A stretch of DNA of 64,000 nucleotides from Geosiphon pyriformis uo1 (Eukaryota > Fungi > Glomeromycota), in NCBI GenBank assembly GCA_016748015.1, contig JAAOMT010000570.1:66043-130042 (forward strand), given 5' to 3'. Positions 2,900 through 59,300 of the stretch are shown here, piece after piece. Position numbers and translations under genes: made by a program. Positions within the stretch are counted from its first letter, which is position 1. The number at the start of each line of letters is the position of its first letter. The notes below the pieces were generated by a model that was not told the origin of the DNA, ran no database searches, and was given only the letters and a program-made list of their open reading frames with translations.

Positions 2900-3439
2900 A
2901 TATATTTTAATAAACAATAAAAAACAATAATTATTTTTAATTAAAAAATTAAAAATACTTTTTTATTAATTAATAATTTACCAGTTTTTATTACAAAAAA
3001 AAAATCTTATAAATATTTAGATATTTTTTTATTAACAAATAATTTGTTTAAATTTAATTTAGCCAAAACTTATTTAGATATCAAGTTTTTTTTTAATATA
3101 ATTTTATGAAAAACTGTTTTAAATAAACAATTTTTTTATTTAATTATAGTTATATTACAACTTATTATTAATTATTTAAGTAAATATAAACAAAAAAAAA
3201 GTGGCTTTAATAATAAGTTTTTTAAATACTAATAATATTTTTAGTTAATTATTTAATTATAAATTTTTAAATCTACAAATATTAAGCTTGTTATCTAATT
3301 ATTTATTACAATTTTTTGTATTTTTTTTAAACAATTTGTATATTATATTTTGTTTTATTATACTTTAATATTTATTGTTTTAAAAAATTTAGTCTTTTAT
3401 AATATATTTTAATTATAAATTTAAACTTTTTTTTTTTTT

Positions 3440-5662: not shown

Positions 5663-7899
5663 TTTCAATTATTTTTAAAATTTGGAATTATATTTATTAA
5701 CCAATTAAAAAAAAGTTTAATTTTTAAATAATTTAGAATAATAAATAATTATTTTTTAATATATGTAAATTTTATAACTTTGCTATGATAAAAAAGTATT
5801 TGTTAGAAATAAATTTAAATATAATTAATATATATAAATAATCTACTAAAAAAATTGGGTATATTAAAAATAAATTGTAATATAACTGTATTTTTTGTAA
5901 ATCTAAACTTAAAAGTTAATATTAAAGTAAGTAAATTAGTTTTTTAATAATAATTAAATTGTAAATAATTATATTAAAATAAAATATGTCTTAATTTCTA
6001 ATATTATTATAATAAACTTACATAATTAAGTCATTTTAAATATTTATTTAATTAAACTAAAATTAATATTGTCAGATTTCTATTATTATTGTTAACTTAA
6101 AAAATATTATATATTAAATATTATTAAAAATTTTATTTTTAATATTATAAAGTTTAAAGTTAAAAACTATTTAAGTATTTTGAATAATAAAAAGATTAAT
6201 AAATTTGCTAATATTATTTTTTGTTTAGTTTAAGTATTTTCTTTTAATATTTATAAAAAATTTATTAAAATTAATAAAATAAATATTTTTAAAAATACTT
6301 AATATTTTGTTTATAATACTTTTAAGATTATTTGTTATATTTATTAAAAATTTAAATTTAATATCAATATTATAAATAATAATATAATCAAAAATATTGA
6401 TTAAATACAAATTTTATTGGTTTAATATTTTTATTTATATATGATTTTTTAATTTATAAATAAATTTACAATTGGTTTATATTTTTATTTATAAAAGTTT
6501 TATATTACTATTTATTTCTTATAATTTAAAAATATTTATATAATAAAAAATATTCTAATATTTTATATCTTTATTATAGTAAAATTAAAAGTTTTAAATC
6601 ATGTTTTTACATATATAATAAATTCTAATACTTATAAATAATTATTAAAAACATGTATTTTATTATTATATAAATTATAACTGTTATTTTTTTGTTATTT
6701 AATAATATAATATATATTGTTTTGTATAAATATATTGTTTTTAAGAATTAATACTATAAAATTTTATTTGTTTTTAATAATAATAAGATTATTATTAGCA
6801 GATTTATTATTTTTAATCATAATTTGAAAATTGTTTATTGTACAAAATATAATTAATTAGATTTAAATATAAAATAATTATAAAAATAATATATTGGGTT
6901 TTTTATAATAGATTTTTGTTTCTAATTATTAATAATTTGTTATCTTTGTTTTTAGATTAAATAGTATTATTGACCAAAATTTGAGATATTATTTAGCATA
7001 AAATTATCTTTATAATTTTTATTATTAATTAAATATATTATTATTTCAATTTATTACTTATTATTTTATCAAATTATTCAAATTATTATTCAATTAATAA
7101 TCCAATTTGTACAAAACACAAATAAAACCAAATTGTAATAATTAAATCTTATAATATATCAAACTATATAATATTTAAAGTTTGTTAAAATATTTAGTAA
7201 TTTGATAAAATATCAATAATTTACCAAAACAATTTATAGTTTGCAAAAATAACTTATAGTTTGATGAAATATATCTTTAACTTATTAAAATATTATAAAA
7301 AAAAAGTGTTAAATTATAAAATAATATTATAATAAGTTATATAAAAGAAAAACTTCTTTTTTTGAAAAAATGTATCTTAATTAAAACTAATATTTTTTTT
7401 AATATTTTCTATATAAATCAATTCCAATAAAATTTATCTTAAAAAACACAAAAATTTTCAACTATTTTCATTGTAAAATTGACTATTTCTTATTAATATT
7501 TTGAAATTAATTAACTATTAATTTTAATAATTAGTAACTTCCAGATTTGAATTTAAAATAACTTTTTTAACATATTTTTTTATTTTTTATTTTAGTTTAT
7601 TTTTAGTTTATTTTTATTATTTTTTATTATTGAATAGTATATAGTTAAAATTTTTTGTTAAAAAATTGATTTTTACAGCAAAGTAACTATACATATTTTT
7701 AAAAAACTTACAGATAAAATTTTTTTGTAAAAAGTCAACTTTTACTGTAAAGTAATTATACAAATAATTAGCATAAAATTGGCTATTTTTTTATAAATCT
7801 AATAACATATACAATTTAAAATATAAAGAGATATTTTAAAAAAGGAATTAACTTATTAGAAATTTATTAACTTCTATTAACAATAGAATTAATAACAAA

Positions 7900-10890: not shown

Positions 10891-11662
10891 TGTTACAGGT
10901 GATTATTTCTGTTGTGGAATTGAATAACAACCCCATAACTTGGTGCTCAAAAGCTACTTTTGTGGATGATGTGCAGAAGGTATAGTATCTGAAGGTTTTG
11001 GTTGATCTGAAGGTTTTGTTGTGGAGTTCTTTGTATAATGAACAGAAATTCAATAAGGTTGATAGTGGTTGTATCCTCAAGTGGTTTTCCTAATTTCTTT
11101 CTCAGCGTGGTGGCTGGATTTAGTCTGGCAGTCATGTCCTTCTAGTAAGCTATCTGATAATATATATAAAGTTCTACCCTTATTTCTGGGTCTTTTATCA
11201 GGCTATCCTTGACGTTAATAACTCAGTACTTAATCTTTTAATCAATTAGTATACAACAACAAAATCAAAGAAAGAAAGAAAATAAAAGAAAATAAAAATA
11301 AAAAAAATAAAGAAAATAAGCCAAGCCAATTTGGTCCGTTAGTATCTCGTCAATAGCCATGATCAAGAGCTATTGTTCCAGCGTGGTTAAGTAGCAATTA
11401 CTATCCACATGAAGTGTTGATAGTGAATAGTGAATTGAGATATGGAATAATTATTTATTTGATGATTGGTTTTTTGGCTAAGAATTCTGTGGTATCGATT
11501 CTGTCTTTTTTGTTTCTAACACTACTGCTATATATACATAATTGGGATTCCTCAATTCCTTGATTCTTCATAACAGGAATCCTGGAATTCCACATTTACT
11601 ATGCTTACTTCTGATTGGCTAATAATTATGCTAATATATTTTTTATATTTCTATGAGTAACA
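10891..11662 (-). repeat. 3' LTR (772 bp)
   Basis: Direct repeat of 17634-18521 with TGTTAC...GTAACA termini. Preceded on the minus strand by the PPT. Confidence 0.95.
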
Positions 11663-18521: not shown

Positions 18522-19039
18522 GTATTTACTTAAAAACATAATAACAAGTATGCTAGCATCTTTTAATATATTTTAAAAAACAATTAAAAAAATTTTACTT
18601 ATAAACAAAAACCTGTTATATAGAAAACAATTAGAGCTTTATAGTCAATTTGGTAAAACCAATAAAAACATGAAACTTATAAAAAAACAACTTTAGAAAT
18701 ACAAATAAAAATTCTAAGTATTATATAGTTAGATGTCTTAAGAGTTTTAACTATTATCAGAAAAGCCAAGACTCTTATACAAAAATTTCATTTCTTGGAC
18801 ACAAAACTTATTTTATTCCAAGTATTATATATTTTATTTACAAAAAACTTTATCAAACTAGTTAGTTTTAAATTAAACAAAACTTTTTAATTTGAATATT
18901 CTATAAATAGTTTGATTTTGTTAAAGCTTAATCTCTTTGGAAAGAATAATATTATGGTTAAAAACTATAATATTTATTAATTATTACATATATTAGTCAT
19001 TAATGTTACATAATTAGCCATTTTATTTTTAGATAATAA

Positions 19040-19180
19040 TTATTGATCTGATTAATGACTTAACTGTTGATTTGATTATTAACTTAATTATTAATCTGAT
19101 TATTGAATTGATTATTAACCTAATTATTAAATTGATTATTGATCTGATCATTAATCTGGTTATTAACCTGGTTATTAACT
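19040..19180. repeat. Degenerate 12-bp tandem repeat (TTATTGACCTGA-like)
   Basis: About 11 imperfect units such as ttattaacctgg and ttattgatctga, within TE debris. Confidence 0.6.
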
Positions 19181-19739
19181 ACTTTTAATTACTATATAAG
19201 TAATAAATTCTTTAGTTATAACAATATTAATGATTAAATATAAAAAATATAAAAAATAAAATAATAACTATTATCTTAATTCTTCTTATATTGCTTATTT
19301 CTTTTTTTTTATCTTTAAGTATTTAAATATCTTAGAATAAAAAATTACTTGTTGGCATTTTTTTACTTTTTTTTTAATTTATGTAATTGTAATATTTAAA
19401 GATTATTGAATAAAACATAATTGAAAAACATATTTAATACTTAATATTAAATTTTAAAAACATCAACATAAGACATAAAATTATACCAGTATATTATTAT
19501 TTGTTAATAGTACAGACTATTTTTCTACTTTCAGATTCTCTTATTATTTTTTGAAAAAAATAATAACTGAAATATTTTATAAGACTAATTTCATATATTA
19601 AATCTATATTTATTTAATTTACTTCTTACAGTTGAATTTTTTTAATTTATTCTATCATCATACAATCTTGTTCTTTTTTACTATCTATTAGCTTGTTACT
19701 TTAACCTATAATATTATTAATTAAATTTTTGTCTATTAT

Positions 19740-19864
19740 ACAAAGAACTTAACTAAAATTTTCAGACTTTAAAATCTTTAGAAATTACTATTATTAACAA
19801 CTATTAAGCATTAAGTTATGAGTTTATTATTTGTTTTAATACTCCAAATAATTACTTGTAATAA
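19740..19864 (+). mobile_element. Decayed LTR end fragment, same family
   Basis: Matches the end of solo LTR 8392-9175 (...tttgttttaatactccaaataattacttgtaata). Confidence 0.55.
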
Positions 19865-19869
19865 TATAC

Positions 19870-22800
19870 TAATTAAAACTAAATTTTTATTAACAAACTG
19901 TTTAAACACAACAACCAAAAAATCAACTAACTTGATAATAAATTTAATCAATATAAAAAACTTAACCAAATCAGCCTTTAAAAAAATTAACTAAAAAAAC
20001 CATAGAATTACTAGCTATTATATTAGCAGAAAAAGCAAAATCAACCAAAGAACTAAAAACTAAAAAAAACACAGAAATAATAGTTTTAGCATAAAATTTA
20101 ATACCAATAAAATAAGACACAAAAGTCTTGAAAAACTTAAAAAAAAAAATAAAGACACTTTATAATTAATAGCCAAATAATTTAAGTTTTGGTATTTAAA
20201 ACAACATTGATATTTAAAAGTTTTTTATTAAATGTAATATTTTTTCAAAATACCAATTTTAATAATAGCAATATCTAAATTATTCTATAAGCCAAATATA
20301 ATTAAAACAAACTAAAAATAACAACCAGAATTAAATAAGCAAAGTATAAAACAAGTTTGACTACCAATCTAAAAAATTATATTATTAATTTTAAAAACAG
20401 TATAATCAAGAAAAAAGTTAATTAATTTGGTCTTAAACTTATTATAAAACAGAATAGTTTTATTTTGATTTACTAAAAAAAAAATTCTATTATTATTCTT
20501 GCTTAATAAAACTAACCAATAATTCAGAACAAATATAACAGTATCTAAATTTTTAAAATAAACAATTATATATTGCCAAATGCCAGTAGACTTTAATACA
20601 ATATAAGAAACTTTATTAAATACACTAAAAGCTGTCTTAATATTAGCAGCAGATATATTTAAAAACACATTATACAGTACAATAACAACAAAAAAAGAAC
20701 TAGACTCAGAAATCATCAAAAATTTGGCAATTTTAAAAGTGACCAAATAAACAGAGCTTGTAAGTTCAACCAAAAAAACAACATCCAAAAATTTTTAAAA
20801 AGCAAACTTCAAACAAAAAAGCTTCATATTGTTCTTAGAAACAAATTTTGTGTTCAAAAAATTATATACAGACTGAAAAATAGTCTTAACATAAGTTAAT
20901 TTAATTTTGAAAGTTGTACAAGCATCAAAGTAGAGACTATTCATTCAGTAAACTTTAATAATCAGTAATGGTTTTTTAAGTATTATTAATAATAATACCA
21001 AAAACCAAAGAAAATAATTCAGTTTTTATTTATTTAGTTTAATTCTTAAAAACAGATAATTAAAGTTCTAATGTTTGGTTTAGTTTAGTTTAAATTCAAT
21101 TAAATCATTAAACTAAACTAAACTTGAACAAAAGATTTAACAAAATTTCAAACTTGAACTTGAACTAGACTTAAAATTACCAAACTTGAATCAAATCCAA
21201 ACATATGTAATAAGTCTGATTTAAGTTTAATTTAAAGTTCATAAACATGTTCAAATTTGATTATTAAAAACATTATATTATATTATATTATTATTTAATT
21301 TTTTTTTAATGGTTCTAATATTTATAATTAAAAACACTGTGTTGCTCTTATAATTTTAAGCATTAAACAAGACTTCATATCTGTAATCATATTTCTATTT
21401 GTAAAAAAGCATATTTAGAAGCAACAGATAATCTTTGAATTGCCAAATAATTACAAATCATATATATAAAACAAAGAAATTGTGTTTAATATGTCTAAAT
21501 ATTAAATTATTAATAAAATATTAATTTAAATAAATATTTTTTGTAATATATCTTCTACTATGCTATTATATTTATTTCCCTATTGATCATTTTTTTAAAG
21601 ATTTAATGATTAATTTTATTAAGTTTTTCTTTTTTATCATCATTAAAATTTGCTTCTAATATGAATTGTGTAATTAATATTATAATATTATTAAAATTGT
21701 TATTCAACAAAAAACTGTCATTTGATGTTGATATAATATTTAGTATATACTTTATTTTAAGGAAAGTATGTATTCTAAAAATTTATTTATTATGTAAAAA
21801 TTGGAAAATAAAACTGTTTGAATAAATTAATAACTTATAATTCTTTTATTTTATTAATATTATTATTCAAAAATTCTTTTTTTGTGAAATAATAAAATTT
21901 TCTCTTTGAATCTAATACAATACAGAACATTACAGTTATATTTGTTTTAGAGTAATATTTAACCAATTTTCTTTTTACTGTTCTAGCCATTATAACAAAT
22001 AATAGATCTAATATTAAATATGTTAAATAAATAACTAAATAAATACAATCAAAATTATAATACTTTACCAGATTTATTATTATCAACTGTGTTTTTGATG
22101 TGATTAAAAATAATATTAAAAAAGAGAATAATTAAAGAGGCAGTATTATTTAAACTAGTTAATATTTTGGTCATAATATTTTTAAATAGTTTAAAGAATT
22201 TAGTAATTTTATTAAAAACAGCTTATTGATTATGTAAAATAGCATATTGATAGAGATTAATATGAATGTTAATAAGGGTGTTTAATGTCTATAAATTTAC
22301 AGTTAGAATTTTTGTATTCAAATATACAGAATCAGAAAAAAATAACTTGCTAATTTAAGAAATAACCTATTTTTGACCATATTATAAGTAGAATTCTACT
22401 AAGTGAGATAATTCAGAATGAGTTTATAATATTTAATTTGATATATATTACTGATGCATTTAAGAAGCTTAAAATATTGAGGCAAAATACAGATTGCAAA
22501 GTTAAGTTTTTTAATTTTTAATTTATATAAAATTTACATTAAAAAAATTTCAGGTAAATATATTCAGTTTGGGTTTTTAACAATACTTTGGAAACATTAT
22601 TTTTTATTTTATTTAAAGCTGTTCATACTATTAAATTTAGAATATTAAAGCATTGAAATTGAAGATTTTTTAAGTTTTATTAAATGTTTTTCTTTTCTAA
22701 TTTTTTTATTAACTTTTTTATAAAAGTATTATTGTTTACAGTATTATTAAAAGTAATAACAAAAAGCTGTCAAAAAAAAATTAGGTTATAACTAATAAAA

Positions 22801-24940
22801 TTAATAGTAAACTTATATAAAAAAAAGTTAAATATAATTTTTTTTAAACTTTTTTTTTAACTTTTTTGGCTGAAAATTTGGCTTAAGACAATATGAAAAC
22901 CACTTAAATTAATATTAAAAAAATGTGGTTTTCAATAATATGAACATTATAATAATTCTAAGCCTTAGATAATACTAATGCTAAAAATTAAGCTCTAAAA
23001 CAATAATAAAAACCAACTTAAGTCAACAATAAGAAAATACAATTTTTGATAATATAGATATTATAATAACTTTGAGTTTTAGATAATACTAATATGCTGC
23101 ATAGTATGTTAATCTTATTATTAGTTATTAACTAATCCAAATTTATGTAAAAATATACATATATATCTTTGATATAATTCTATAATCTTTTAATATTTTA
23201 AAAAATCCATTTACAATATTTATTCTATCATATCATCTACTTATTAATTCAAAATTAATTATTGTTTATTAAAAGTTCTAATTGTTATTGATATAATAAA
23301 CAATAATGAAAACAAAAGCTTTGTTATTAAAAAATGTTTAGAAATCTAATATAAAAAAAATATTAGACTTGATAATATTTAAGTATGTCTATTATGTTAT
23401 AAATATAAATAAAAAAAAAGAACATTTTATAATAAAGATAGTACTTATTTTTAATTTTTGTCTATCCAAGACATAGAGTTCTATGATTTTATTTTTAATT
23501 AAATTAGCACAAACAAATTGAAAAATAGGGTTTAAATATTAAAATATTTTAATTAATTTAGAGTCTTTTATTATAAGAAGTAGTAGTTAACAGTTAATAG
23601 CCAAATAATAATCATATTACAAAGTTTTTTATTGTCAATATCAATAGTAGTTACTACAGAAGATTAGAACAGTTTTCTAGTTAAATTGGCCAAAAATTAT
23701 TAAAAAAAAAGCAATATTATTTGTTGAACTATTTTTTTAATTGACTTGTAATATTTTTAAACATTTTGCCTTTTTTTATAATATTCTTCTATCATAATAT
23801 ATACTATCTAATAGAAAGTCTTTAAATAATACTATAAGAGTTTGGTAGTGTTTATAGTTCTATAAGAAAATAGTTTATGTACATATTTTAAAACTGTACA
23901 TTTAATTGTTTTTTTTTTCATTTACTTAAATTTATTAAAATAGTTTCATACTTTATTCTAAAAACTATGTTTACCAAATATATTAATATTTAGACTATTT
24001 GGATTATTAAATTCTATTATTTCGAATTTTAAATCTTTGGTAATATTAGATAATACTAACAATGAATTTATTTTGGTAAGTTGAAGAGTAAAGTTGTTAC
24101 ATATACATAGTTTTATATTTTTTTTTAACTAATTATAATAATTAAACAAAATAATAATTAATAAACAAGTAGTACAAGTTATATTTTTTTTTAATTCTAT
24201 TAAACTTTAAACAAGTTTGTAAATTTTGAACCAGACTTAAACCAAACTTAAACTTGTCAAAAAAATTTAATATTAAACTTGAACTAAACTTATTTTGAAA
24301 AATTGGTTTGGTTCAGTTTAATTTGATTGAAATCCTATAAATAATTCAATAAAAGATCTTTGTTTTGTTTTCAAAACTAGTAAGAATCTGTTTAAAGACA
24401 TCATATTTGACAATACAGTTAGTAATTAATTTTAGCTTATATTAAACAATATGCTAAATAATACAATAAAAATCTTATCTAAAATTACAAAAAAATTTAG
24501 TGTAATAATAATAGAAACAAGTAACTGTTCTTGCTTTTAGAAATTTTTGGCTTTTTTGGCCATTTTCAAAAAAATAGTATTAGTAACACTAAATATAATA
24601 GCAATAATTAAAAAAACTAGTTTGTTAACTAGTCTACTATTAAAAACTTTTGAATTTTTAATAGAAATAGAGGCAACACTAAAATTAACTTAAATATGTT
24701 TCTTAAAGAAAATTTTAACTGGTAAAAAACCAGCCAAAAATAAAAAAAATGCTTTAAAGACTACTAAAAACAGTTTTTTACTATCAATACTTAAAGAAAA
24801 AGTTTTTAAAACATTCTGTTTAGCTGTTTTTACAACAAAAAAAACTTTTCTGGTTAAAACTTTATTAGATATCTTAAAAAAGATATTAAATACAGTTTTT
24901 TTACTCTTTGTTTTAATTGTGATTATAAAATTAAGATGAC
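19870..24940 (-). mobile_element. Second half-LINE-family ORF1 copy, split by a hAT insertion and truncated at its 3' end
   Basis: ORF 20369-20788 is homologous to 4216-4527. Segment 24346-24930 is reverse-complement homologous to 3440-4050, and the homology resumes at 21052. Confidence 0.8.
21061..24337 (-). mobile_element. hAT (Ac-like) DNA transposon, decayed
   Basis: TIRs TAAAGTTCTAAT and TAGGATTTCAAT(rc), consensus about TAGGGTTCCAAT. 8-bp TSD CAGATAAT/TAAATAAT. Subterminal AAACT(T)RAAC repeats. Minus-strand relic of the hAT dimerisation motif (NYLAIQRLSVASKYAF, cf. DYLAIQGSSVASERAFS) at about 21365-21480. Confidence 0.85.
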
Positions 24941-25554
24941 AAAAATAATATTTTTATATTATTGTAATAAATAGTAATAAAATTATTTTAAAAACTGATT
25001 TGTAATTAATATATGTTATAAATAACAAAAAAAATTATAAAGCTAAAAAAACAAATATTAGTAATAATAATTAATAATTAGTAATAGCAAATATTTTATT
25101 GTATGATAATTATTTTTTAATATTTAAAATATATTATTTTTTTATGTTATTATAAACAATTTATAATTTTAAGTAATTATTTTAAAATTAATAAAGTAAT
25201 TTGTAATAATTTATAAATATAACTAAATACAATAATTAAATTATAAAACATTTGCTAAAATTAAATAAATAAATTATATTCTGTTAATATTAACTATTTG
25301 TTTATTTATTATTATTATAATTTTAACTTTTTTTTATATTTGAAAAGTTAATTAATAAAATATATGAAATTTGCAAAAAATGTAAATAAATGTTTTCAAG
25401 GATATTAAAAGTAAAAATAAACAATATAAAGTAAATTAAATTAAATTAAATTAAAAAATTTATTAGAAGCAATTAACATTAATAATATTTCTATATTTTT
25501 TGGTTTTTAAAAACAATTAATAAATTTTTATGAATAATTACAACATTATATACT

Positions 25555-25965
25555 AGTGTAGTCAAGTTCTTAATGATGCTGTCGCGTCGGGTCGCCTATA
25601 TATGGCTGTGGCCAAGGGTTTTGTTTTCAAGGATTGGTATAGGAAGTCTTTTTCGCATCGTGAATTTTGTTCGTGGTTTTGTTGTTGAACATAGGGACCG
25701 CATTTAGTTGCCGAACTCCAGGCTCAGGGTGGAATATGAGAGAATGGATCTGATAATGAGGAGCGATTTTGTTCTGCCCAGTGTTCGTGGCCTGACAGTG
25801 GTTGAGTCATGGTTTGTCGGTTTCAGATGAATTTTGTAGTGCTTTCTGGGGCAGGTGGTTTGTCGCCCGAGTGGCTGGTCACATGTAAGCAAGGTGTGAG
25901 CCACACCTATTTTAGAGTATTTTCTTTGCTGTATTGTGGTAGGCAGTGGTTGGGCTACATTCGTA
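25555..25965 (+). mobile_element. Short LINE 3'-region fragment retaining CpGs
   Basis: Translates LYMAVAKGFVFKDWY...VNFVRGF, similar to ALFKSFVFNGWF...AEFVCSL in ORF 2367-2768. Confidence 0.6.
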
Positions 25966-26404
25966 AAATAATAATAATTATAAAACTAGTATTTATTTAA
26001 TCTAATCAATTTTTTTAAGAAATATTTTTGAACTACGACTTTAAATATTTTCAAAAAGTAATAAATGGATTTCACATGAAAAATAACATACTTTACAAGT
26101 AATAATAAATGCATTTTACAAAGAAAGAGATAAAGAAACCACAAAAAAATATATTCTAAAGTTTCTATTGTTTGCTTGCACAAAATTTTAAAATGTCTCA
26201 ATTTGGATTAATTTTTGTTTTGCAAAAACTTTTGCCAAGGTCTGTTGTATTAAACTCATAAGAATTGATTAATTTGGAGTACAGGATAAGGTATTCTATT
26301 TGGAAAGATATTTTTTAAAAAAAAACATGCAACTGTTAATTTAAAAAAACGAAAATAGAATCTAAGAAAATATTCTAGCGTATTTCCATCTATTTTATCA
26401 TTCC

Positions 26405-42499: not shown

Positions 42500-45050
42500 A
42501 AATTTAATTAGTTTAATATATACTTATATAATAATTCAGATTTTTGTTATTTAAAGTTTGGTTTTTTTAACATTAAATTTTATATTAAGATTAAAGAACT
42601 TTTATAGAATAATTATATACATAATAATATAATTTTATTTATAACTAAAATTTTTTCATTATCTGAATTAATTTAAAATTTTAATTTAAATTCAAATTTA
42701 TTATAAAAAACAACAAGATAAAATACAACAAATAAAATAGTAATTTTAACTTAAAAATTAATCCAACAAAATTAATTTATAAAATATTTGAACATAGCAA
42801 ATAATTATAAAAATAATTTTATAATTAAAATTTAAATAATTTATAATAATGTTAATATTTAACTTTTTTTTCAAAATACCAGTTTTAATAATAACAGTAT
42901 TAAAAACTTTTTTTAATTTAAAAATAATAATAATAATATATATTATTATCAGTAATTAAATATAATTAAAAAAACATATTGTTTTAATAAAATATAATTC
43001 AATATTATAAATAAAATTCAAATTTTACAAATAATTATAATTTATGTATTTTTTACATACAATTAACTATTTAAATTAACCAAAATTATATAAATAACAT
43101 TAATAAAAATATTTAATTTATTACATATTAAATAATAATTAATAATATTAATTATTTACAAAAAACTTGGTTTAATTACAAAATTTAGCATAAAACAAAT
43201 GTTTTAACATAAAAAAATCTAATTTAATAAAACAAAACCCATATAATATATTAATATTATTTATTTTTAAAATTATTAATAATATTTTTTAAAAATAATA
43301 CATAATTTTGTTTTAAGTAATTATATTTTTTTTAATAAAAAGTAACAAAATAATAAAACTTTATTATTTTAAAACTATTTAACTTTACAAATCTAAAAGT
43401 TTTAAAAATATTACTAAACCAAAACTTAAATATAAAGCTTTTATTAAAACAATATATATTTTTTTATTAAAAAGATTTTACAAAATTTATTATAAAAAAA
43501 CAAAACACTAAAATTCGAAATTTTTTAATAATTAAATTAAATTAAAACTGTTTTATGTTAATTAATATTATTTATAAAACTTGTATTCAAAATTTTTTTA
43601 TAAACTTTAATTTTTATTAAATATAAACGTTATATACAAAATATTAAATATTATTAAAAATAATTATAATATTATATTTAAAAAAAATATGTTAAAATTT
43701 TAAAAAACAAAACATAATTAAAAAAACAATTCTTATTAGTTATATAATTTGTTATTTTATTATTTAAAACATTAAAATAATTATTAATTTTAATTTAATT
43801 TATTAATAAAGTTTTATTTTAAATAATATTGTTAATTTTTTATTTTATTGTTTAATAATTATCTTAAGAATTAAATATTAAATATTTACTAAATTTGCAT
43901 ATATAAATAATAATCAAATTATTTGTAAAAACATTATATTTTTGCTGTGTTAAAATATACTTTAAAACTATTAATTAAAATTAAAAATTAATAGTTAAAA
44001 ACCAATAATTAATTTTTATTTTATTTATTTCAAAAAACTTTATTTATTAATATATTTAATTTTAAAATTACTTTAATTAAAATTTTATATTTTAGTTTTT
44101 AAAAAACACAAAATTTTTTTATATTATATTTTTAAAAAAAAAATGCTGATTTTTTTTAATATTATTATTTTTAGTATAATTTTTTTAATAATAATTATTA
44201 AAAATAAAATATTAACAATTATTTTTTTATTTAATATTAACAATTTAAATTTTGATAAATTATTTAATAAAACTGTGCTTAATTAAAACAAATTAATTAC
44301 AATAATTTTTAAAATAATTTTATTTTTATTATTATAAATAATTTAATTGATAATTTTAAAAAAAATAACTTAAATACAAAATGTAAAAGATTATTTTTAA
44401 TCATAAAAATAATTAATAATAATTTATAAGTAAAAATTATCTGTAAAAAGTTTAATTTACATAAACTATAATTATTATTATTTAAAATTAAAAATTTTAA
44501 TAATATTTAATAATTATTAAATTGTTTTAAATACTAATTTAAATTTAATTTGGCAAATAATTTGTTATTATTATTGTTTAAAACAGAAAAAAATTTATTG
44601 TTTACAGCCAAAATAAAATTAAATACCATATTTAATATTAATAAAAAAAAATTACAGTATAAAAAAATTAAATCTTATTTTTTAAATAAAGAAAAACAAA
44701 CTTCAAAAAATAATAGTGATTTAAAATGATAACTTAATCATTGATTTATTATTAAGAATTCTATAACTTTTTACAATAATTGTAAAACATTAAAACTAGG
44801 GTTTAATATATCATTTTAAAAAAACTTTAAATAAAAAAAAAATTTTTAATCAAACAAAAAAAATGCTATTAAAATAGCTAAAAACTGTTTTAATTTAAAA
44901 ATATTTAAGAAAAGTGTTTTTATAATCTTTTGTCTAACTGTCTTTACAACTGAAAGAACGTTTTGAATTGTAACACCTTTAAAAACTATAGAAAAAATAG
45001 TGGTTGCTTCTTTTTTACTTTTTACTTTAATTATAAAAAATAGAAGAGAA
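42500..45050 (-). mobile_element. Extremely AT-decayed TE block including a half-LINE-family ORF1 copy
   Basis: 44800-45040 matches the ORF1 5' end (cf. 24700-24930). 42870-42905 matches 20245-20280. Confidence 0.6.
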
Positions 45051-47035: not shown

Positions 47036-49308
47036 ATGAATTCGATTGATAAAGACAAAATATTTTCAGATTCTTCAAGTGACTCAAATATACATTTGGA
47101 AGACGAGTTAACAAAACCAAAGCTTAAACGTAGGGTGTCCAAACCGCCAACTCCAACAAGGCTACTTCGAAGCACAGCGAGCTTTTCGGAGGCTGGCGAC
47201 AGAGATCTAGAGCAAAAAACGCCCACCAGAAACTCGCAGAGCAATTCCGCCCAACATTCTTCCCTTTCCCCAGATGGCCGAGCTCTAAATTCCATAGCAA
47301 CAAAAAGACGAGGCTACATTCCCCTCTCAAAACCCCCGAGAAAGAGGTCCAGGTCTTGGTGTAGTAATAGTCCTAGGACAAAGACTAAGGAGGAGAACGA
47401 ACACACCTCCCCTTCTGGAGTTGAATTCACCAACACCAAGTTTTTGTCCTTCGAGGCAGTCGAGGTCCCCGTCAAAAGAACATCTTCGGGCAACCGACCA
47501 GAGGATTCGACGATATTAGGTTACTTATTAATTTTATCGAAACAATCATTTTAACGCGAAGGCGATCAAATAAATGGTTTGCAACATCTAAAGATACTAG
47601 ATATTCCACTTATGGGTTGACCCGAATAATACGAGGTCATTCTGAGACTGAGCTTGGAGAAAGTGATAATCGCACTGCGGTTTGGTGCTGTCAGTTTCAG
47701 CCTACAGCAGAGCTATGTAAGTTCTGATTATACCTTCCTATGTTCACCGCAGATTTTTTTTCGAACTTGTGATAAATATCTCTAAACCTTTGGAATGGCA
47801 GCCTCACGCTCGAAAATCGTGGCTACTTGTGGAGGTCCTAGCGTTTGCTTTATTGATTGTAGCTTAGGGAAAATAATCACCAAATATACTCATATTGAAC
47901 CAAATGAGGAATTGAAAACTTTAGCTTGGTCTGATTTAGAAGCTGAGGGGGTTGAAGAAAATAGTACAAGAAAGTATTACATTGTGGCCACTGCAGGTAC
48001 ATTAATAGCTTTTCTTGGATTCTTTTAACTATATGAGGTCTTTTTCCTTTCAAATCAAGCCTTTTAACTTAGGGAAGCTGGGCATAATCAAGTTGATTGA
48101 CTATGTTCAGGGTCAGTGCTACGATTATCTTATCGGACATACCGACGAAGTCTCCCAATTGAAATTCTCCAAACAAAATAAGCACTGGTTATTTAGTATG
48201 TATCATTCGCTGAAACCATTTTATTTGATTTCAAAGTCCTAACATAAATTTATTTTTAAACCAAGGTGCTTCCCAAGATGCTTCTATCCGTATGTGGCAT
48301 ATTGGGCTACCCCGATCAGATAACCAAGCATCATCAAAGTATAAGAAATCAAGGCTATCTTTACGATTTTATTGCCAAATTCTCTGTTTTACTTTGATGT
48401 TTTCAAATGGCTTATGAATATCTTTTTTTGTCGCTATACAAAGATGCCTGGCTATATTTCAAAGCCCAAAATATGGGTTTTCCTCATTATGCATATCAAA
48501 CGATTCAAAATCTTTATTCGCTGGATGCTGCTCTGGAACGATGGCTAAATATAATCTTAAAGATATTTCCAAGTCGACTAGCATTGAGAGTGCTCCAATT
48601 CAAATAGAACCGATTCAGCACTATAAAGCTCGTCGATATGTGGATTGGCATTGGTCCTACGTGGATGACATGTTCTATACACAAGAAGGGTCTATAGGTG
48701 ACTGATAAGAGGGTGATATTTTTGCTTTTAATTGGCTAAGTCAATCAAATTGCCCTTTTTAGTTTCTCGTGGTTCATTGGACGGGGAGATCATTGTATGG
48801 TACCCTGAATCAAGTGGAGCGAATGAACCCGACATAAAGTGTTTGCATGAGTGGCCCTCAGCGCCACCCGCTCAGGGAATGAAATTTCGAGTTGTAGACA
48901 CTGAGGGTAAATATAGAATATATTTTTGAATCATGATATCCAATCCCTTGTGATATCTCTTAATACATATGATGTTTTCATCTGATTTCTTAAAGATGAA
49001 TTGACTCTAATAACTGGCGGCGAGAATGGCAGGATATATATTTATGACCTGCGAAGACATTCTGAGGTCCTCGATTCTACAAATGATCGTGGATTTATTT
49101 TATCAAAATGCCTTGTCTCAATGGTAAGGGTTTTTTTGAACGTTTCTTGAATACATCTGTCTAGGTGAGAATATATCTTTCCCTCCTATGGCAGGTCCTT
49201 GATACTTTAGAATCAGACGGTGGAATACTTTGTGTTGATATAAGTGATGATCTTTCCACTATTGTTGCGGTTGACAATCACAATCGTATATTTGTATGGG
49301 AGAGATAA
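47036..49308 (+). CDS. WD40 protein with a disordered basic N-terminus, LRWD1/ORCA-like
   Basis: RGHSE...VWCCQFQP, VATCGGPSVCFIDCSLGKIITKYTH and IVATAGKLGIIKLID resemble the LRWD1 propeller. GT-AG introns; stop at 49306-49308. Confidence 0.7.
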
Positions 49309-49416: not shown

Positions 49417-51533
49417 TCAATGATTTGAGGATGATTCCATCTTAGAGAGCATCCTTTGCGCAATATTCATATAGCACTTAGTGTGATGGCTATCCGGTTT
49501 CGCGATTACAATCGGCTGACCAAGATCCGATAGCTCACATATATCGGCATGCAAAGGTACATCACCCAAAATATCAATACCCATTTCTTTTGCTGTTCGA
49601 GATGCTCCGTCATTGCCGAATATGTGCGTGGATTGGTGACAATTGGGACATAGAAAATATGACATGTTTTGCATGATTCCAATGATCTTGAAATATTCAA
49701 TTCAAAATGTCAATTTCATATTTACAAACCGATATATGGTTGAAATTCGAGGAATATGAATAGGATTTAAATCACACAAGATAAAAGACATGAAAAAAAT
49801 CACTACAAACCGGTACACCAACTTTTCGAAACATATTTGCCCCTTTTTTCGCGTCGATAAGTGCAATATCTTGAGGAGTCGAAACAATTACAACCCCTTT
49901 GGAACGAATTATCAGTTCAGGATTTTGATAATTCCAAACTTTTCTGTGAAAATACAACTGTACTTAATTACCATCCAATTCAACCTGCTGAGTGATAGTT
50001 AATTGTGTATCTCCTGTCCCGGGAGGCATATCAATGATCAGAAGATCCAGCTCCCCCCAGTAAACTTGATGAAGCAACTGCTGAAGAGCTTTCATCACCT
50101 ACGCGATGGAGTTTAAGCTTGACATCAAGGTTTAGAATACGATGCAATACATGGACATACCATTAAGCCTCTCCAAACCACAGGGGCATCTTCGCTCACC
50201 AGGAAACCCATTGACATGCATTTGACTCCATAATTAATCAAAGGAATCAACTGACCTTGATATCAAAAATATCATGAATTTAAGATTTTCAGAAAGCGGA
50301 ATAATCGAAAAAAAATGACAAGCTTTATGTCGAGAAACCTTTATCCGTTATATTTGGTTCGCCTTTCAAATTCATTAATCTCGGAAGTGAAGGGCCAAAT
50401 AAATCTGCATCTAATATTCCTACGCGTTTTCTTGACAAAGACGCAACGGCCAAGGCAAGGTTCACTTCAGCAATCAATATACAATTTGTACGTCAGAATA
50501 GTAAATTCTTCAAAAGCTACCGAAGCAAGGAAACAAAGGTCTCTTTCTCCATTTTTAGAAGACCCAAATGAAAAGTGATGTTAAGTTTCCATTCATAAGA
50601 TTCGTGTTAATCTGAGCTCGATCCAGCTAGTTTTTTACTTGATCATGTTGCCACAATGTATAGTGAAACCACAGATAAAGGTTGTATTAAAGAACCTCAT
50701 TGATCTATTAGCCATGGGAAGCTATTATTTAATAAGCCGGGAATACAAATATAGCATGCCTAATGAGGTTCAAGGGTGATAGATGAAAACCAACCCATCA
50801 TATTGAGAAAACTATTTATTCCGATTATAGGATAAGCCAAATCGAATAAATTCAATAAATGATGAAAGTCAAAAACCTTGTTCAGTAGATTTGCCGGAAT
50901 CTTTCGTTGTGCACTACCATTAACATTCCCTTGCATTATTATCCCTGAAATTAATCTTGTTTAGGGGATTCAAGAATACAAAGTGTTTCACCCTTCCTTA
51001 GACAAAATGGTCAGACTTTTCCGGGGGTAAATTGTAACATAACTGGGGTGATAATGGTAATACTCAACGATAGAAGGCCTTGTCAGTTACATTTCAAAAA
51101 GCCATCACTCCCCATTATGTGGAATTGAAGATTTTATTGAGTGACGAGTTAATTAATTCTAATCTTGAAATATACCTGTGGTTGTTGACTTTCCTACGCC
51201 ACCTTTTCCTGAAGCTACGGCAATTACATTCTTAATGTTTTCGAGTCGCCTTTTAGCAGGCAAACCACGTTGCATTCGAGCAATGCTCGCAGGAGACTGT
51301 TTCAAGGGCGAATTGGCGGAGAACTTTGAAAAAAGTCCCTGAATATATATTTTTAGACCAATCAGTAGACGAAGGAATTTTTAGAAAATTCCTTATGAAA
51401 GTTAGAATTTTTTTACTAGAGCATTCTCGCCCGCAAGAGGCAAACTATGAGAAAAGAATCTCTTTGCGTTGAGCAAAATTCTCTGCGAGGTGTATTTCTT
51501 TGGAAAATACCATAAAATATGCAACTTCCGCAT
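49417..51533 (-). CDS. IND1: Mitochondrial Mrp/NBP35-family Fe-S assembly ATPase (Ind1/NUBPL)
   Basis: Presequence-like N-terminus; [15 protein letters not shown]; [11 protein letters not shown]; VVWRGLM; [11 protein letters not shown]; [11 protein letters not shown]; [11 protein letters not shown]. Confidence 0.93.
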
Positions 51534-51752: not shown

Positions 51753-54379
51753 ATGTCCAGTAAAAGAATACACAAATATTTCGACCGCAAGCCCGCAGAA
51801 TGGAGCATGCTCGGATTTCTGAACGAATGCCATATAGAGCCGTTCAAACAGAAGATAGATGAATACCTCAAATCCCTTGCGAATATTATGGATTGCGGAA
51901 ATGACAAAAGACACGAAAAAGCGAAGCTCCTTTTCGATAGGTATAGGAAAGTATGGATCTTTTTGTCTGAAGGTGAGGGAAATAGTGGCGTGACGGGAAC
52001 CTTTTCGCTTCCTTGTCATTCAAGACTCTTAGTCGAGCCACAAAACCGGTGCTGGGGCACAGGTGACCTCTTCGCTTGCCTGATGTTCAAGACTCTTCGT
52101 CGACCCAGCACTGGTCCCATCAGGGCACAGGTGACCTTTTCGCTTGCCTGATGTTCAAGACTCTTCGTCAACCTGATGGGATGGGGATCAGAGGCATCTT
52201 AATCGAGAAACAGTACTAATATTCTATGACTTTCGTACCAGGATACTCGGCCTGATCGCCAAATTGCCAAAGATTGGGACAAGGGGCACAAAGCAGAAAC
52301 AACGGGAAGCGGACCCTCCTCAATATATTTCCAAAATTCGACATTTTTGGGGAGCGGGATTGAAACTATCAACCATGGAACTTACCTGCGAGGCAATCAG
52401 AAGATTGGTGAAGACAGTGCTCATTTTTGGCAAAAAAGGAAGTTACGCGAAGAGGTCAGTTACACCTTTCAACTTATATCAATAAATCATTTAGTGCTTT
52501 TGATGATTTTCTAACGGAGTTGAGTTTGGCTCATATTAGGCTTACGAAGACGATGCTATAGATGCCGAATCGTCTAATACAGATACTGAAGACGAAATAA
52601 TCAATGATTCATTTGGTATGGATGAACCCATAATCGTTAAGCCAGCAAGATCAGTGAAGAAGGTGAGCATATTTCCAAATCCGACTGAATTGCTTAGGTT
52701 CAAAATAACTGATAATGCCTCGCTCCTCATCAATTATCTAGGTAAAACCGAGTAGCAATATTGATTTTAGAAGTGATGACGATGTGGAGGATATCGATTT
52801 TGGAGTGGACCCAAATATCATTTTCCCTGAGTCGGAAAATGGAAGTGAGATGTCTGTCTGCAAATACCCCGCTGAAGACAGCTCACCTGACGTTTGGTTG
52901 TTACCTTCTGGAATCTCTGCTGCAAAGGCGATCTGTGGTCCTTCTTCCCTTCCTAGCGCTCAGTAAGTTCTTTTTTTTTGTCTTTTTATCTTCATTTTCA
53001 GTCTGACCTGCGGATACTTCTTTCATTTGCAGCCCGTCTCATATCGGTATCATCCGTGTTGGCCCAAAACTTCGACGACCTGATTGGATTCAACAGGTTG
53101 ATTGGAAGTATTTGTGGGAAAGTGCTGAACTTCCCGTACATCCAGTAATTGATGCTGCGCTGGCTCTCTTCCAGAAGCTTGCTGAAACCGTAAATATCTT
53201 AAGGCTCTCGATGGTTAATGTTGAGTTAACATTAACTTTCATTGTCAATGAATACAGGAATCTCGGGAAGAATATGGAAATTGCATTCGTCAAGCAAAGT
53301 CAGAAAGCCAGCCTGACAAACAGATGACGTTCTTCCTTAATGTACTGGAGTGGTTGTAAGTGTCTGAATATTCATTGAAGAGAAAACGCGATATTCTTCG
53401 CCACTGATACATTCTTGATATCACCTTGTAGTGCCGACACTGTGTTCAATCCTGACAGCGCTTTTCACAGCCCTCGCGCAAAGGAATCAGTTCTGGGATC
53501 CCTCCTCGTTCACCCGGTCCTTCAATATCTTATCAACACGAGTGATAGTGCCATCATCTATCTTCCGGGGGAGATCTATCTTGATGCTAGTGCAAATCAG
53601 CGCATGATCCGCCGTCATCTCATGCCCGAGGATGGTAGGCCATTGGGCCTCAAGGTCGATGGGATTTTTCAATCCCCTGGCAAAGGAGGACTCGAGATTG
53701 GCTTCTTGGAAATGTCCGGGGGCCATATGACTCACGATATGCCCCGGTATTTGAAGGATCACGTGCGTGGTTGTCAAGGGGAACGAGACATCCTTGACAA
53801 TGTAGCCGCGAAGCTTAAGTATGGCGATTATCAAGTCATGAGACGGATGCGAACTTGGTTCCTTCATACTCATGGTGGAGTATAGGTTATACGCTGATAT
53901 GCGTGTTGGGTTATGAGCCTTTGAACTCATTTTTATTTAAACATCTTCTCTTATTACTAGGGCGCGATGTGCAAGTGTGGGGGATGGATCTTCCGGTGAA
54001 GGGGGTCTACCGGATGATCCTCGCAGGAAATTTTCGGCTTCCTATCGACTGGGAAGATCATCATGAGCTACTGCATAGTCTACCAATCTTATGGAACCTG
54101 GGAGTAAGTGTTTACTCTTGGTAATTTATTTTATTGCCAAAAATGCTGGAAGTAATTATTTACTCTCGGCAATTTATTTTATTAAAGAAAGGTCTAAAGG
54201 ATACTGTCAGCACGCTCGAGGAGATCAGAAAATCGCATCGTCAGCAATTTGTTACGCACTCAAAGATTTCGAGGCCTTTGAAAGCTTATATTGGTGAGCC
54301 CTTTTGCACGCCTACAAAACCCAAAGGCAAGAAGTCCCGAAGCATCGATCCTTTTAAAAAGAAAGACTTATCATCATAA
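51753..54379 (+). CDS. Multi-exon protein with a C-terminal PD-(D/E)XK restriction-endonuclease-like (Crinkler-REase-type) domain
   Basis: Exons 51753-51950, 52242-52454, 52540-52662, 52742-52962 and later ones join in frame through GT-AG introns with branch points. C-terminal GEIYLDAS...KVDGIF...LEIGFLEMSGG...D motif. Confidence 0.75.
51985..52181 (+). repeat. Three tandem structured-RNA units in intron 1 of the REase gene
   Basis: Three 47-nt cores, each closed by its own different inverted repeat: GTGGC/GCCAC, ACCGGTGCTGGG/CCCAGCACTGGT and CCCATCAGG/CCTGATGGG. Confidence 0.85.
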
Positions 54380-56329
54380 GTGTCACTGATTGGATTATTT
54401 AAATTGCTGTAAATATTCGCATCTAGCACTATTATTGTAAGTTGTCCATAGACAAATACTTCAAGAACATTGGCATTGAATAATAAAAACTTTAGCACAA
54501 ATTTAAAATTACTTTATATAAAAAACATATATTTACATTAAATTCATTATGAAACCCACAGTACCATTAAAAGCATTTTGAAAGTAAAAAATTACCCAGA
54601 GTATATAATAGTTTTTTATTATAATTTTATAACAATATTAAAAAAATATTTTAATAAAATCCTAAATATTTATTAATTTTAATTAAATTATTAATTAAAT
54701 TTTTTTTTTATGTTTTACAAGATTTAAATTATAAATCAAACTATGTGAATTTAATTAAATATAATATATATACTTGTTACATATAATCATCATTTGGATT
54801 AATTATGATTTTATTGTATATTTATATACACCAAAATTTTATTATTTAAATTTAAAAAAAAAGAGCAATAACTACACAAATTAATATTTCATTAAAAATG
54901 GTTTAGTTATATTAAATATATGTATTATACTAACATAAAATTTAACTGATAATTCATGTAATATATAAAAAATCAACATATTATTACTTATTAAATTATT
55001 TTTTTCTATAGCAGTTCTATATTTAAATTTATACAACCAAATTTTGTTTTTATAATTAATAATTAATTAATAAATATAAAACTCTTATAAAAAACAGTAT
55101 ATAAATTATTTTTTAAAAAACAAAAAAACAGAATTTAAAAAATTAAAAACCAAAAAAACTATACATTAATTAATATATTTAATATTTATTTTATAAGTAA
55201 AAATATGATTTAAAAACTTTATTTTTTTATAATATAAACACAAAACTTTAGAATAAAATTTATCATAAAAATATTTTTTTATTATATAAATATACAAACT
55301 AATAGTAAGCTTATTAATTAAATTTAAATAACATATATAAATTAAAATACCAAACCAAAAAGATATATACCTAATTAAAATTTGTAATTATATAATTATT
55401 TATTATTTTAGCACCAGAATTTGTTTTTTATTGAATATAATACACAATTTTAAATATATTATAATCAAAATAACAAGCATTTTTAAAAATTGTAATATTA
55501 TTTACTAGGAAAAATTTTTTTTAAATAAAAATAAATAAAATAAATAAATAAATTATTTTATTAGTAATATTAAAGTAATTATTAACTTTAAATCAAATAA
55601 CAAAAATTTTATATCAAAACAATATTTGTAATTTGGTATTTTTTTATTCAACAGTAATTGTATTGATTTAGCAATAACAATTTAAGTTTAAAAACATATA
55701 TATTAAAAATTGCTTAATTATTTAAGTAAATTATTATTATATTAAAAGCCAATATATATTTAAAAACTAAAATAATAATTTATATCTTAATTAATATTAA
55801 TAATGCCAAGTTTTAAACTTAAATACTTATATTCAAACTTAAATTGACAAAAAATATTAAAATATTATTAATATTATTAAACAACTTTAAATTATTTAAT
55901 AGATTATTTGTAAAAATATTAATTTTGCTTTTTTTAAACACTTTTTTATCACAAAAAACTACTTAAATTGTAAATACTTTAACAACAAAAATCATAAATT
56001 ATTATTGAATTAGACAAATAAAAATTATTAAATCAAATAAAATTTATAATAATAATAAACCAAAAAAATATAAAGTTTTTTAAATCTAATTTTTTCTAAC
56101 AACAAAACATTTTTTAATTAAAAATAATATTATATTTATTAATAAAGTAATTACTAAACATTATATTAAATTTTCTTAAAAAAAACTACTTTATAATATA
56201 AAAAACATTTTATTATTTTAGCCAAAAAATTGTTAATTAAGTTAATTTTTAATTTAACAAAAACTATATAAGTTTTTTATTTTATTTTTTTCTTGTTATT
56301 TTCTTGCAAACATTTTTCAAGTAAATAAT

Positions 56330-59300
56330 CCTTTTGTGGTAAATCTGGTGGCTGTTTTAGGTAGTATTATGTTTAAAAAGAAAGCATACAAAAGAGTTCT
56401 TTATAATTCTATTAGAGATTCTTTTTCCCCAAAAAAAGATGTCTGTTGGTAATATTAAACATTCTGGTAATAAAAAAGATATCTTTTTAGTCAAATCTAA
56501 TACTAGTAGTAGTGTATTTTTAAATATAGACAGTAAATCTGATAATAATGAGAATAATAATATTTTTTTAGATGTTAATAGTGGCTTTCTTTTTGGTTTG
56601 GCAGCAAATACTCTTAAAATTAAGAAAGTGAATACTGGTTTAATTTGTGGTTTTTTTATTGGCTTAATTGATTATAGCATAAATAAAAATGAAAGATTTT
56701 TTTTCTCTCTTTTAATATTTTTCTTAAAAAAAAGTGGATTGATTCTAAAATAGTATTAAAAAATTCTTTGCATTAAACATTAATTTTTCAGTTGTTGAAG
56801 AAAAATTAGTAATAGCAAAGACTCAAGTAATTAGAAAACTTTTTTCAACAATTAATAATTTTGGAGAGACTATTACCCTCTCAAAATTTAAAGGGATTAT
56901 TTGATTTATATTTACATCAGAAAAAGCATAAAAAAGACTGTGTTATTGGCCAAAAAAAAAGAAATTATCATAAACAATGATATCAAAAAACAAAAAATTC
57001 GTTCAGATTAGGCTGTAGTTTTTAAGAAAATTCTTATAAATATCCCAAAAAAAATAATTATTGTAGCTCTTTTCAAGTTTGGTCAAGTAATATTAATTCA
57101 TTTACAACTAATTGGATTGTGATAAAAGACTGTAATGAAGTTTGTTAAATTAGTTTAGACAAATCAATTGGTAACAAAATGGTCATTTTTGATTGAAAAA
57201 AATTTAGTACACATAGTTAAAGCCATAGAAAATTATAATATTTAAATGTTAAGGGATTAGTTTAGGGCACTTTTATTTACTTTGTTGATAAAAACAACTG
57301 TTTATAATCTTGGTATTCTATTAAAAAGGGCTAATAAGAAAACTTGCATTATAAATTAATTATTTAAAATTGGCAACAGAGTTTACTATACAGTAATTGA
57401 CTTTAAATCAAAAAAGAAATTGGAGTCAGCTTTTTATACAAAGCTTATTTTAAGTAATGTCAAGCTCTTTTGGGCTAGAAAAAATCTGGTTCATTATAAA
57501 AAATATGAGTGGTTTGGTTACTTATTTCTTGAATATAATTTTTTAGGCCCATTAGTTTTTGTCTCAAAAAAAATTTATAAAAAGATTGTATTAAATAAGA
57601 ATTATCTTTAACTGGTCTATCTATATACAAAAAAAATGTTTCCATTGCTTATTCTGTTGCTTTTGGTAACAAATTTTGGACACAAATAGTTTTTTTAGTA
57701 GTTGGTTTTATTAATATTTATTTTGGTTCTTTTTACAAATTCTCTTTCACTGATAACTCTTATTTTAGTAGTATTCTTCTCATCTCTTAAGACATGTCTT
57801 TTTTTAATAATTGGCTGGCTTCTCTAGAATGCTCTTTAGAACTGTTAACAAATTAGATATCAATAATTATATGTAAGTTAAATGAGATAAATTTGGTATT
57901 ATTTGTGTTTATTTTTGTCTCTCCTATTTTAATAGATTTTTCAGTTCTAAATTTAAGTTTGGCTTCAAATTTGGCTACAAATATTTTCTTATTGGCATCT
58001 TTTTTTACAAATTTTAACATAGTACTAGATAATTTACAGATTTTATTTTCTTCTCTTTTATTGGCAATAACTGGGATTTTGGTTTTGAATTTAAGCAGTT
58101 CTAAGATATTAACTACTAAGATTTGAAGTTTGGAATTGAAGATAGTTATTCTTGAAATGTTTGTTAATTCAGTTTTGAATAATTAAATCAGTTGTGTACT
58201 AGCTTAAACTCTAAAGCACTCTTTTTACATTAATGATCAGTTTTGTTTAAAAGTTTATGACCTGTAATATTAAAAAAATAAACAATTTAACTAAACAAGA
58301 TAATGTTATTAGGTGGCATAAAAATTCAGATAATTTGGTTTTTATTATTACAGAAACAAAGCTAAAAAGGTGAACTAAACTATGGATTAAAAACAAATTT
58401 TTGGGTTTAAAAGTTTTTGTTTCTGAATTGAATATAAGTTATTTGAATTTAAGAGTAGTAGTAATAATGAATAATAATCTTGTCAAACATGTGTGCAAAG
58501 TTTTTAAGATTTTTGGTCATCTTATTTCTATCCATTTTTTTTTTGCCAATAAAGTTTCAATAACAATTTTGGGCTTGTATACTGGTGCTTTAATTAATGT
58601 AAAATTTAGTCAAGTATACAAAATAAACTTTTATATTACCAAGACTGTCAATTCAAGTTTTTATGTAATACTGGGTGGAGATTTCAATAAGAATTGAATA
58701 AAACACAATGCTAGTCATAAAAAATATTTGGATTTGGGTCTGCATAACTCTCTTTTAAGTAGTTTTTTTACTAAACTTTCTATATAAAGTAATTTAAAGA
58801 AGGTAAGAAAGACTATTGATTTTATTTTTGTTAATAAACACTTTTTAATGGCTGTAATGAGTAAAAGTTTTAATAGTGTATCAAATTTTTTTGAAACAAA
58901 TCATATAACTGTCTCTGTTTCTTTTGATTTGAGTAATCTCTTAGATAAATGCTTAAATACAATTCAAAAGCAAACTAACAAAGACTGCTGAAAGTTTAAG
59001 ATCAAAATTTGAATACAGCCAAGTGAATCTACTTTAAAGAGTGTTTTTCTGCCAAAATAGTAATATATTTAGATAAGTTCATGAATACAAAAGATTTTGG
59101 TAATCTGGATTTTATATGAGAAATATTAAGAACAATGATAACTAATTTGGTGAATTTGATTTTTTCTAAATATTGGTTTAATGTTTTCAATTATTTAAAA
59201 AATAGACAAACTTTTAAGTTTTACAAGCTTAAAATGTTAATTGCTAAGTTGGTTAAGACCTCAATCTTAGACAACAGTTCAGATTTTACTCATTTCATTA

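Follow-up and report, generated by a model that had tools for sequence, protein, structure and literature searches.

The first intron of a putative nuclease gene of Geosiphon pyriformis holds a tandem array of three structured RNA units, and the hairpin loops of such units change from gene to gene together with one residue of the protein domain encoded by the preceding exon. The reading we favour, and regard as probable, is that this N-terminal 'header' domain binds its own intron, holds it unspliced and limits production of the nuclease, so that header and intron together act as a self-recognition cassette. Three of its elements, namely binding by the header, the sign of the effect on splicing and the fold of the nuclease, are inferred. 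The window, i.e. the whole stretch of DNA analysed, is 64,000 nucleotides long, and the array was first noticed by a model working from these letters only (here the sequence-only reading).

The host gene and the array in its first intron

The host gene corresponds to G. pyriformis KAG9291731.1 (595 aa), and its parts are listed in Table 1. Pfam gave nothing for the header, or for any part of 10 full-length family members. The header also lacks a clear structural match; fold searches returned only weak helical or bromodomain-like entries, and no similarity to any RNA-binding fold was found. In the C-terminal domain the KVD, E and D positions are conserved and the predicted strand order fits PD-(D/E)XK; it is from the motif and the predicted strand order only that we infer this fold, the model of the domain having a pLDDT of 45 and fold matches that are all non-significant.

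Table 1. Features of the host gene and its intronic RNA array, in window coordinates
Feature	Position	Strand	Remarks
Exon 1	51753..51950	+	66-aa predicted all-helical N-terminal 'header' domain, the putative RNA-binding part
Codon 36 (Asp in the window gene)	51858..51860	+	residue covarying with loop base 5 (D:U, G/S:A, E:G)
Residues 40 and 47	51870-72, 51891-93	+	same helix face as residue 36; weaker signals
Intron 1	51951..52241	+	291 nt, phase 0; donor GT in the window gene and GC in most homologs
ORF on intron 1 retention	51753..52151	+	132 aa; header plus read-through, without nuclease domain
RNA unit 1	51985..52041	+	three-way junction; tips 52001-07 (loop UUUUC) and 52026-32 (loop UCUUA)
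RNA unit 2	52045..52115	+	12-bp P1; tips 52068-74 and 52093-99 (loop UCUUC in both)
RNA unit 3	52116..52180	+	tips 52136-42 (loop UUUUC) and 52161-67 (loop UCUUC)
Exon 2	52242..52454	+	conserved start RPDR..AK.W, the cassette end
Exons 3-9	52540..54379	+	acidic linker, helical region and, at the C-terminus, a putative restriction-endonuclease-fold domain; splice joints supported by RNA contigs
Exon 7	53433-53876	+	carries the KVD..E motif

The window copy is one of the few Geosiphon copies with an intact frame. Most Geosiphon paralogs are broken by stops and by C-to-T or G-to-A decay, a pattern that fits RIP-like mutation. Blocks at 9-25% GC occur in the window (on contig G000:C654) at 3001-11000, 19001-26000, 43001-45000 and 54500-58000, and intron 8 (54098-54183) contains a 38-nt direct repeat, 87% alike, which duplicates the donor region. 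By eye, the neighbours are NUBPL/Ind1-type P-loop protein-like (49417-50477, minus strand) and WD40-like (47795-48929, plus strand).

Each unit consists of a closing stem P1, a bulged stem P2 and a hairpin P3. The sequence-only reading had drawn P1 at 51985-89/52037-41, 52045-56/52104-15 and 52116-24/52172-80, and these coordinates and sequences were correct on re-reading; it had also placed the other elements correctly, from the bulged P2 stems and UCAA linker to the hairpin of P3 with its trailing RA. The window contains 3 matches to the unit pattern, where 0.00 would be expected by chance. Folded as a whole, the plus strand of the array forms three three-way junctions at -78.5 kcal/mol (z -2.0), compared with -68.4 (z -1.1) for the minus strand. 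Units 2 and 3 also fold well singly on the plus strand (z -3.6 and -3.2), and unit 1 weakly (z -1.7), its junction being the centroid structure rather than the MFE. That the sense strand is the one that folds, as had been proposed, follows from the family as a whole, in which G-U pairs outnumber A-C pairs by 304 to 55.

One element of the earlier description needed revision. The 9-nt loop that it called invariant is so inside the window array only; family-wide it is a C-G-closed pentaloop of gene-specific sequence. The tip of P3 carries the same pentaloop as the tip of P2, a point absent from that description. The best-conserved unpaired bases are an A-A before P3 and a G-A after it (unit columns 38-39 and 51-52; window 52022-23 and 52035-36), which may interact as tandem sheared pairs in the manner of a kink-turn-like junction. 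An origin as a tRNA-derived repeat was rejected, as there is no cloverleaf and the B-box-like 9-mer of units 2-3 overlaps the junction; ARAGORN found 0 tRNA genes in the window.

An RNA family linked to the header domain

A covariance model built from the three units, the check suggested by the sequence-only reading, recovered 54 units in the genome of G. pyriformis, and a second model 70, mostly in arrays of 2-4. An array is present at 23 of 26 header loci in this genome, and two of the three exceptions are AT-decayed. Conversely, the arrays sit behind the same exon-1 domain, and those without a detectable header are decayed loci. The header domain forms 360 clusters at 50% identity, with members in Rhizophagus, Funneliformis, Diversispora, Gigaspora, Dentiscutata, Racocetra, Acaulospora, Entrophospora and Jimgerdemannia. 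The RNA family is found in Glomeromycotina and probably also in Endogonales. Genes fetched by their protein alone had the array in the same intron in 11 of 11 cases; among the assemblies concerned is GCA_003990765, which we take to be Jimgerdemannia. Scanning metagenomes for the RNA pattern gave 17 true contigs (15 distinct), all with the array behind an exon-1 header domain; the other 47 of 64 matches, several of them on gut-metagenome contigs, were chance matches when scored with the RNA model. Viral contigs gave 0 exact-pattern matches and 0 in the protein scan, prokaryote genomes gave 4 pattern matches with 0 passing the covariance models, and no similar array lies near the nuclease-only paralogs L140 and L141.

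Homologs with compensatory changes support the claim of a selected RNA structure. Among 95 distinct units, 91.2% of cells were paired compared to 75.1% after shuffling, double changes were seen in 14 of 16 pairs, and slid controls paired in 33-54%; these counts lean towards structure, because the unit alignment was fitted to that structure. Conserved junction bases are G6-U35, U36, A38, A39, G51 and A52, with few others, and unit 3 lacks P3 in many homologs. No Rfam 15 match over the array was obtained at E up to 10. A MITE or inserted repeat was also rejected as the source of the arrays, which lie at one intron position behind the header and show no shared upstream or terminal motif.

The proposed link to an expanded fungal nuclease family held in part: the array does sit in intron 1 of an expanded fungal gene family, but it is tied to the header and not to the nuclease domain, whose closest relatives carry other headers. 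These C-terminal-domain relatives are mostly 50-60% identical, and the header itself sits on C-terminal domains of nine separate BLAST groups. Conservation begins at the start codon and reaches a few codons into exon 2, and the upstream DNA of family members shows no conservation and no shared motif. The best reading is that exon 1 and intron 1, together with the beginning of exon 2, make up a portable cassette that precedes several different nuclease-like C-terminal domains. Six Rhizophagus relatives by nuclease domain (P0191, P0189, P0192, P0195, P0197 and P0198) have a distant helical header with a weak match to the window header; an RNA array of another kind may be present in the first intron of these genes.

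Gene-specific loops and header residue 36

Throughout the family, the hairpins end in C, five nucleotides and G, a 7-mer of which the five inner bases vary. The P2 and P3 tips of one unit have on average 4.14 of 5 bases in common, compared with 2.63 in shuffled data (maximum 3.03), and tips share 4.25 bases within an array and 2.54 between arrays. The consensus loops of the arrays are of 26 different kinds, and a single intron displays 5-6 copies of one gene-specific pentaloop on 2-4 three-way junctions. Unit 1 of the window differs from units 2-3 in its stems and has the same tips, which rules out copying of whole units and points to a gene-specific selector of the loop. What variation exists within arrays is mostly C/U. 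In L054, L055 and L094 the same loop position is C in the P2 tips and U in the P3 tips of all units, a sequence pattern that may reflect a small difference between two binding sites within each unit. Internally duplicated and rearranged arrays (L056:1780-1900 and L139:480-600) keep the gene's loop at every tip. Two related arrays lie about 4 kb apart in opposite orientation at G000:C701:1147682-1152023, and a doubled four-unit array is found at G000:C737:575580-575856.

Base 5 of the 7-mer covaries with header residue 36 (K-I-D36-x-Y): Asp goes with U, Gly or Ser with A, and Glu with G. Over 40 loci, with the loop consensus curated by eye, this combination ranked top of 330 residue-base column pairs (z=12.7), followed by residue 40 (z=6.2); among the 66 header columns only residue 36 and its neighbours on the helix face track this base. 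The 29 loci with an unbroken exon 1 comprise D:U at 15, G:A at 6, E:G at 5, and S:A, N:G and A:U at 1 each, and no residue is paired with two bases among them. L073 (G36), whose tips are divided equally between A and G (three each), was scored as A, and L041 (Q36, mixed loops) was left out. Read-through protein sequences, in which the translation continues into the intron, were decodable in 8 cases and fitted the code in all 8; two more loci also agree. Predictions stated beforehand for two Glu and two Gly proteins were correct in all four cases once the DNA was fetched, an outcome expected about 1 time in 1000 from base frequencies, and further fetched loci paired Ser with A, and Asn with G. 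Besides L073 with its split tips, three pseudogenes depart from the code; they belong to a single clade, have E, N and Y at position 36 and keep U. Once base 5 is accounted for, residue 47 is associated with base 6 (z=3.9, 0 of 400 shuffles), which is suggestive only.

Codons for residue 36 vary synonymously, so the match is at the amino-acid level, and this excludes base pairing of the loop with the codon-36 region. Residues 36, 40, 43 and 47 lie on a predicted helix (31-48) and interleave with the conserved hydrophobic positions 35, 38, 39, 42 and 45, which suggests that they make up its exposed face. In a tree built with the scored codons and loops masked, and with L051 and L126 left out, base 5 requires 10 changes and residue 36 requires 9, with 7-8 for U alone across bootstrap trees. 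Supported sisters switch both, namely L054 (D/U) and L136 (G/A) with support 99/83, and L056 (D/U) and L139 (N/G) with 98/93. The tree is star-like, and its well-supported independent contrasts number only 2-3, too few for a sign test; independence of the co-changes is for this reason likely rather than proven. The covariation and the correct predictions support direct contact between header and loop, which we regard as quite likely.

Splicing of intron 1, alternatives and known systems

The donor of intron 1 is GC at 25 of 39 loci and GT at 7, the window gene included, while the other introns of the same genes are by appearance ordinary GT introns. At all loci, read-through meets an in-frame stop within 2-66 codons of the intron. 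The only RNA run found yielded contigs with GT-AG joints at introns 2-8 that are unbroken across both ends of intron 1. The dominant transcript in that run thus retains intron 1 and encodes the 132-aa header-only product, although this reading comes from a single run and from its assembled contigs, in which rare variants are lost and the annotated spliced form is not seen. Compared with the assembly, the RNA contig lacks 3 nt at 52217, near the intron-1 branch region, and has a T-to-C change at 52619 in exon 3, both probably strain or allele differences.

In the mechanism that we propose, the exposed face of helix 31-48 (residues 36, 40, 43 and 47) would read the pentaloops base-specifically, probably with several header copies per array. 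Header bound about 35 nt from the weak donor would keep intron 1 in, and the retained transcript would give header-only protein or be degraded. The resulting negative feedback would cap a potentially harmful nuclease whatever promoter precedes the copy, and with residue and loop changing together, each paralog of a genome would have a feedback loop of its own that does not cross with the others.

Header binding could serve other ends. Tandem structured repeats with gene-specific single-stranded parts beside a putative nuclease recall ToxIN (PMC8860590), and the intron RNA or units released from it, bound by the header, might act as a decoy that neutralises the finished nuclease instead of controlling splicing; the residue-base code fits this equally well. 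We consider it unlikely, since splicing control is indicated by the weak GC donor and its conservation, by the early stop and by the retention seen in RNA, since the residue that matches the loop is in the header and thus distant from the nuclease domain, and since neither a pseudoknot nor any sign of released units is seen. A positive role, with the header promoting splicing like a maturase or forming a cis-preference RNP for gene mobility, draws on the same covariation and could account for a dispersed family with unrelated upstream DNA and many decayed copies; transposon links of REase-type Crinkler-related domains are on record (PMC5289972). However, the genes keep many spliceosomal introns and are therefore not retrocopies, no reverse transcriptase or shared upstream terminal repeat was seen, and an activating header made from retained transcripts should drive splicing, yet retention dominates. 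This makes a positive role rather doubtful.

Other readings dispense with contact between header and RNA loop. Subfamilies might have fixed residue and base by shared ancestry, another factor reading the loops, and the poorly resolved tree with its few supported contrasts leaves room for this, as does the fact that conserved structure and GC donor need no header partner. It is improbable all the same, considering that only residue 36 and its helix-face neighbours, of 66 columns, track the base, that the best tree has about 10 state changes (7-8 for U alone), that sisters switch both and that the predictions were correct in 4 of 4 cases. Six copies of one short motif, and the helix-turn-helix DNA binders among Crinkler-related headers (PMC5289972), would suit an operator array in which the header binds the repeated 7-mer in double-stranded DNA, for transcriptional autoregulation or in a transposase-like manner; compensatory stems and the excess of G-U over A-C pairs (304 vs 55) would be needless for such sites, and the motif is always at a hairpin tip, so we judge an operator very unlikely. 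The self-cleaving ribozyme offered by the sequence-only reading is less probable still. A compact tandem three-way junction with conserved junction bases would be in keeping with one, and contig depth is higher 3' of the array, but the loops are the variable part and conserved bases are limited to a few junction positions. Moreover, there is no Rfam ribozyme match at E 10, an HDV-type pseudoknot can be drawn (by eye) for unit 3 only and the HDV-like loop sequence is not conserved, unit 3 is often without P3, and the contig break is explained by the repeat. We give hardly any credence to the guide-RNA option in the form of loops antisense to the gene's own exon-2 donor. A 12-nt perfect complement does link the unit-2 tip to 52446-57 (exon-2 end and donor), in the window gene only, and the C/U bias of within-array variation would agree with pairing; however, L054 has no complement anywhere in the locus, even with G-U, loops and exon-2 donors fail to match in L053 and L056, Glu-Glu is often encoded at the end of exon 2 regardless of loop, and no complementary target covaries with the loops.

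Splicing feedback through the header, our preferred reading, has its nearest counterpart in fungal introns of ribosomal-protein and tRNA-synthetase genes (RPS13, lysyl-tRNA synthetase), which have a conserved structure thought to be bound by the gene's own product (PMC8216456). The likeness lies in a conserved RNA structure in the gene's own intron, with product binding here being our interpretation. The family combines this structure with a donor that is mostly the weak GC, a premature stop on read-through and, in the one RNA run, retention, and of the three functions offered by the sequence-only reading it is the regulatory one that fits these features. The published introns reuse a housekeeping rRNA- or tRNA-binding activity at one fixed site (PMC8216456), whereas the header is a dedicated domain of 66 aa opposite 5-6 repeated sites, with a loop that varies among paralogs along with a single residue, and the whole is a cassette that moves between different C-terminal domains.

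Three further systems resemble parts of the cassette. In type III toxin-antitoxin systems such as ToxIN, tandem structured RNA repeats lie beside a nuclease gene and the cognate protein reads system-specific parts (PMC8860590); a conserved core with system-specific single-stranded parts in tandem repeats is common to both. Those systems are bacterial, and their RNAs are pseudoknots, transcribed upstream and both cut and bound by the RNase active site (PMC8860590), in contrast to the eukaryotic, intronic, nested three-way junctions described here, for which the matching residue is in a separate N-terminal domain. Membership was rejected, the units not being pseudoknots and the protein having no ToxN/AbiQ-type Pfam match. 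In the PUF code, base identity is set by helix residues i and i+4, and Glu reads G (PMC8384837); header residues 36 and 40 are likewise i and i+4, and Glu goes with G. PUF and PPR proteins are, however, repeat proteins on extended strands with one repeat per base, as opposed to a single small helical domain facing a hairpin pentaloop, and no sequence or fold similarity was found. Crinkler-related proteins consist of a header and a REase toxin domain, and unrelated alpha-helical headers have been described (PMC5289972). They share with this family a conserved N-terminal header, a variable nuclease-like C-terminus and an expansion in Glomeromycotina (PMC5289972). Their headers are supposed to have a delivery role (PMC5289972), while the header of the window gene appears to read its own intron. 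We rejected membership in the Crinklers (CRN) proper, as there is no ubiquitin-like LFLAK header, no Pfam match in the 10 full-length members, and the header is predicted to be all-helical.

The cassette is thus outside every RNA family, protein domain and system tested here, and no published description of the RNA family or of the header-loop code was found in the literature searched. By analogy, it probably works like ribosomal-protein splicing autoregulation, the new element being a residue-base code that names the header as the partner of the loops. On balance we lean, with little more than even confidence, towards a eukaryotic, diversifying protein-RNA self-recognition system, in which a 66-residue domain reads a pentaloop by a simple code and serves as a plug-in splicing governor for paralogous nuclease genes. 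If true, this would mean a new RNA family together with a new RNA-binding fold, and natural orthogonal pairs of small protein and hairpin, usable like MS2, PP7 or boxB tags. If binding is confirmed, the header would rank as an RNA-binding domain of very small size, for which nature supplies both a specificity code and no fewer than 26 loop variants. It would also assign a function to one of the unexplained helical 'header' domains of arbuscular mycorrhizal fungi, and would explain how these fungi tolerate large families of nuclease-like genes.
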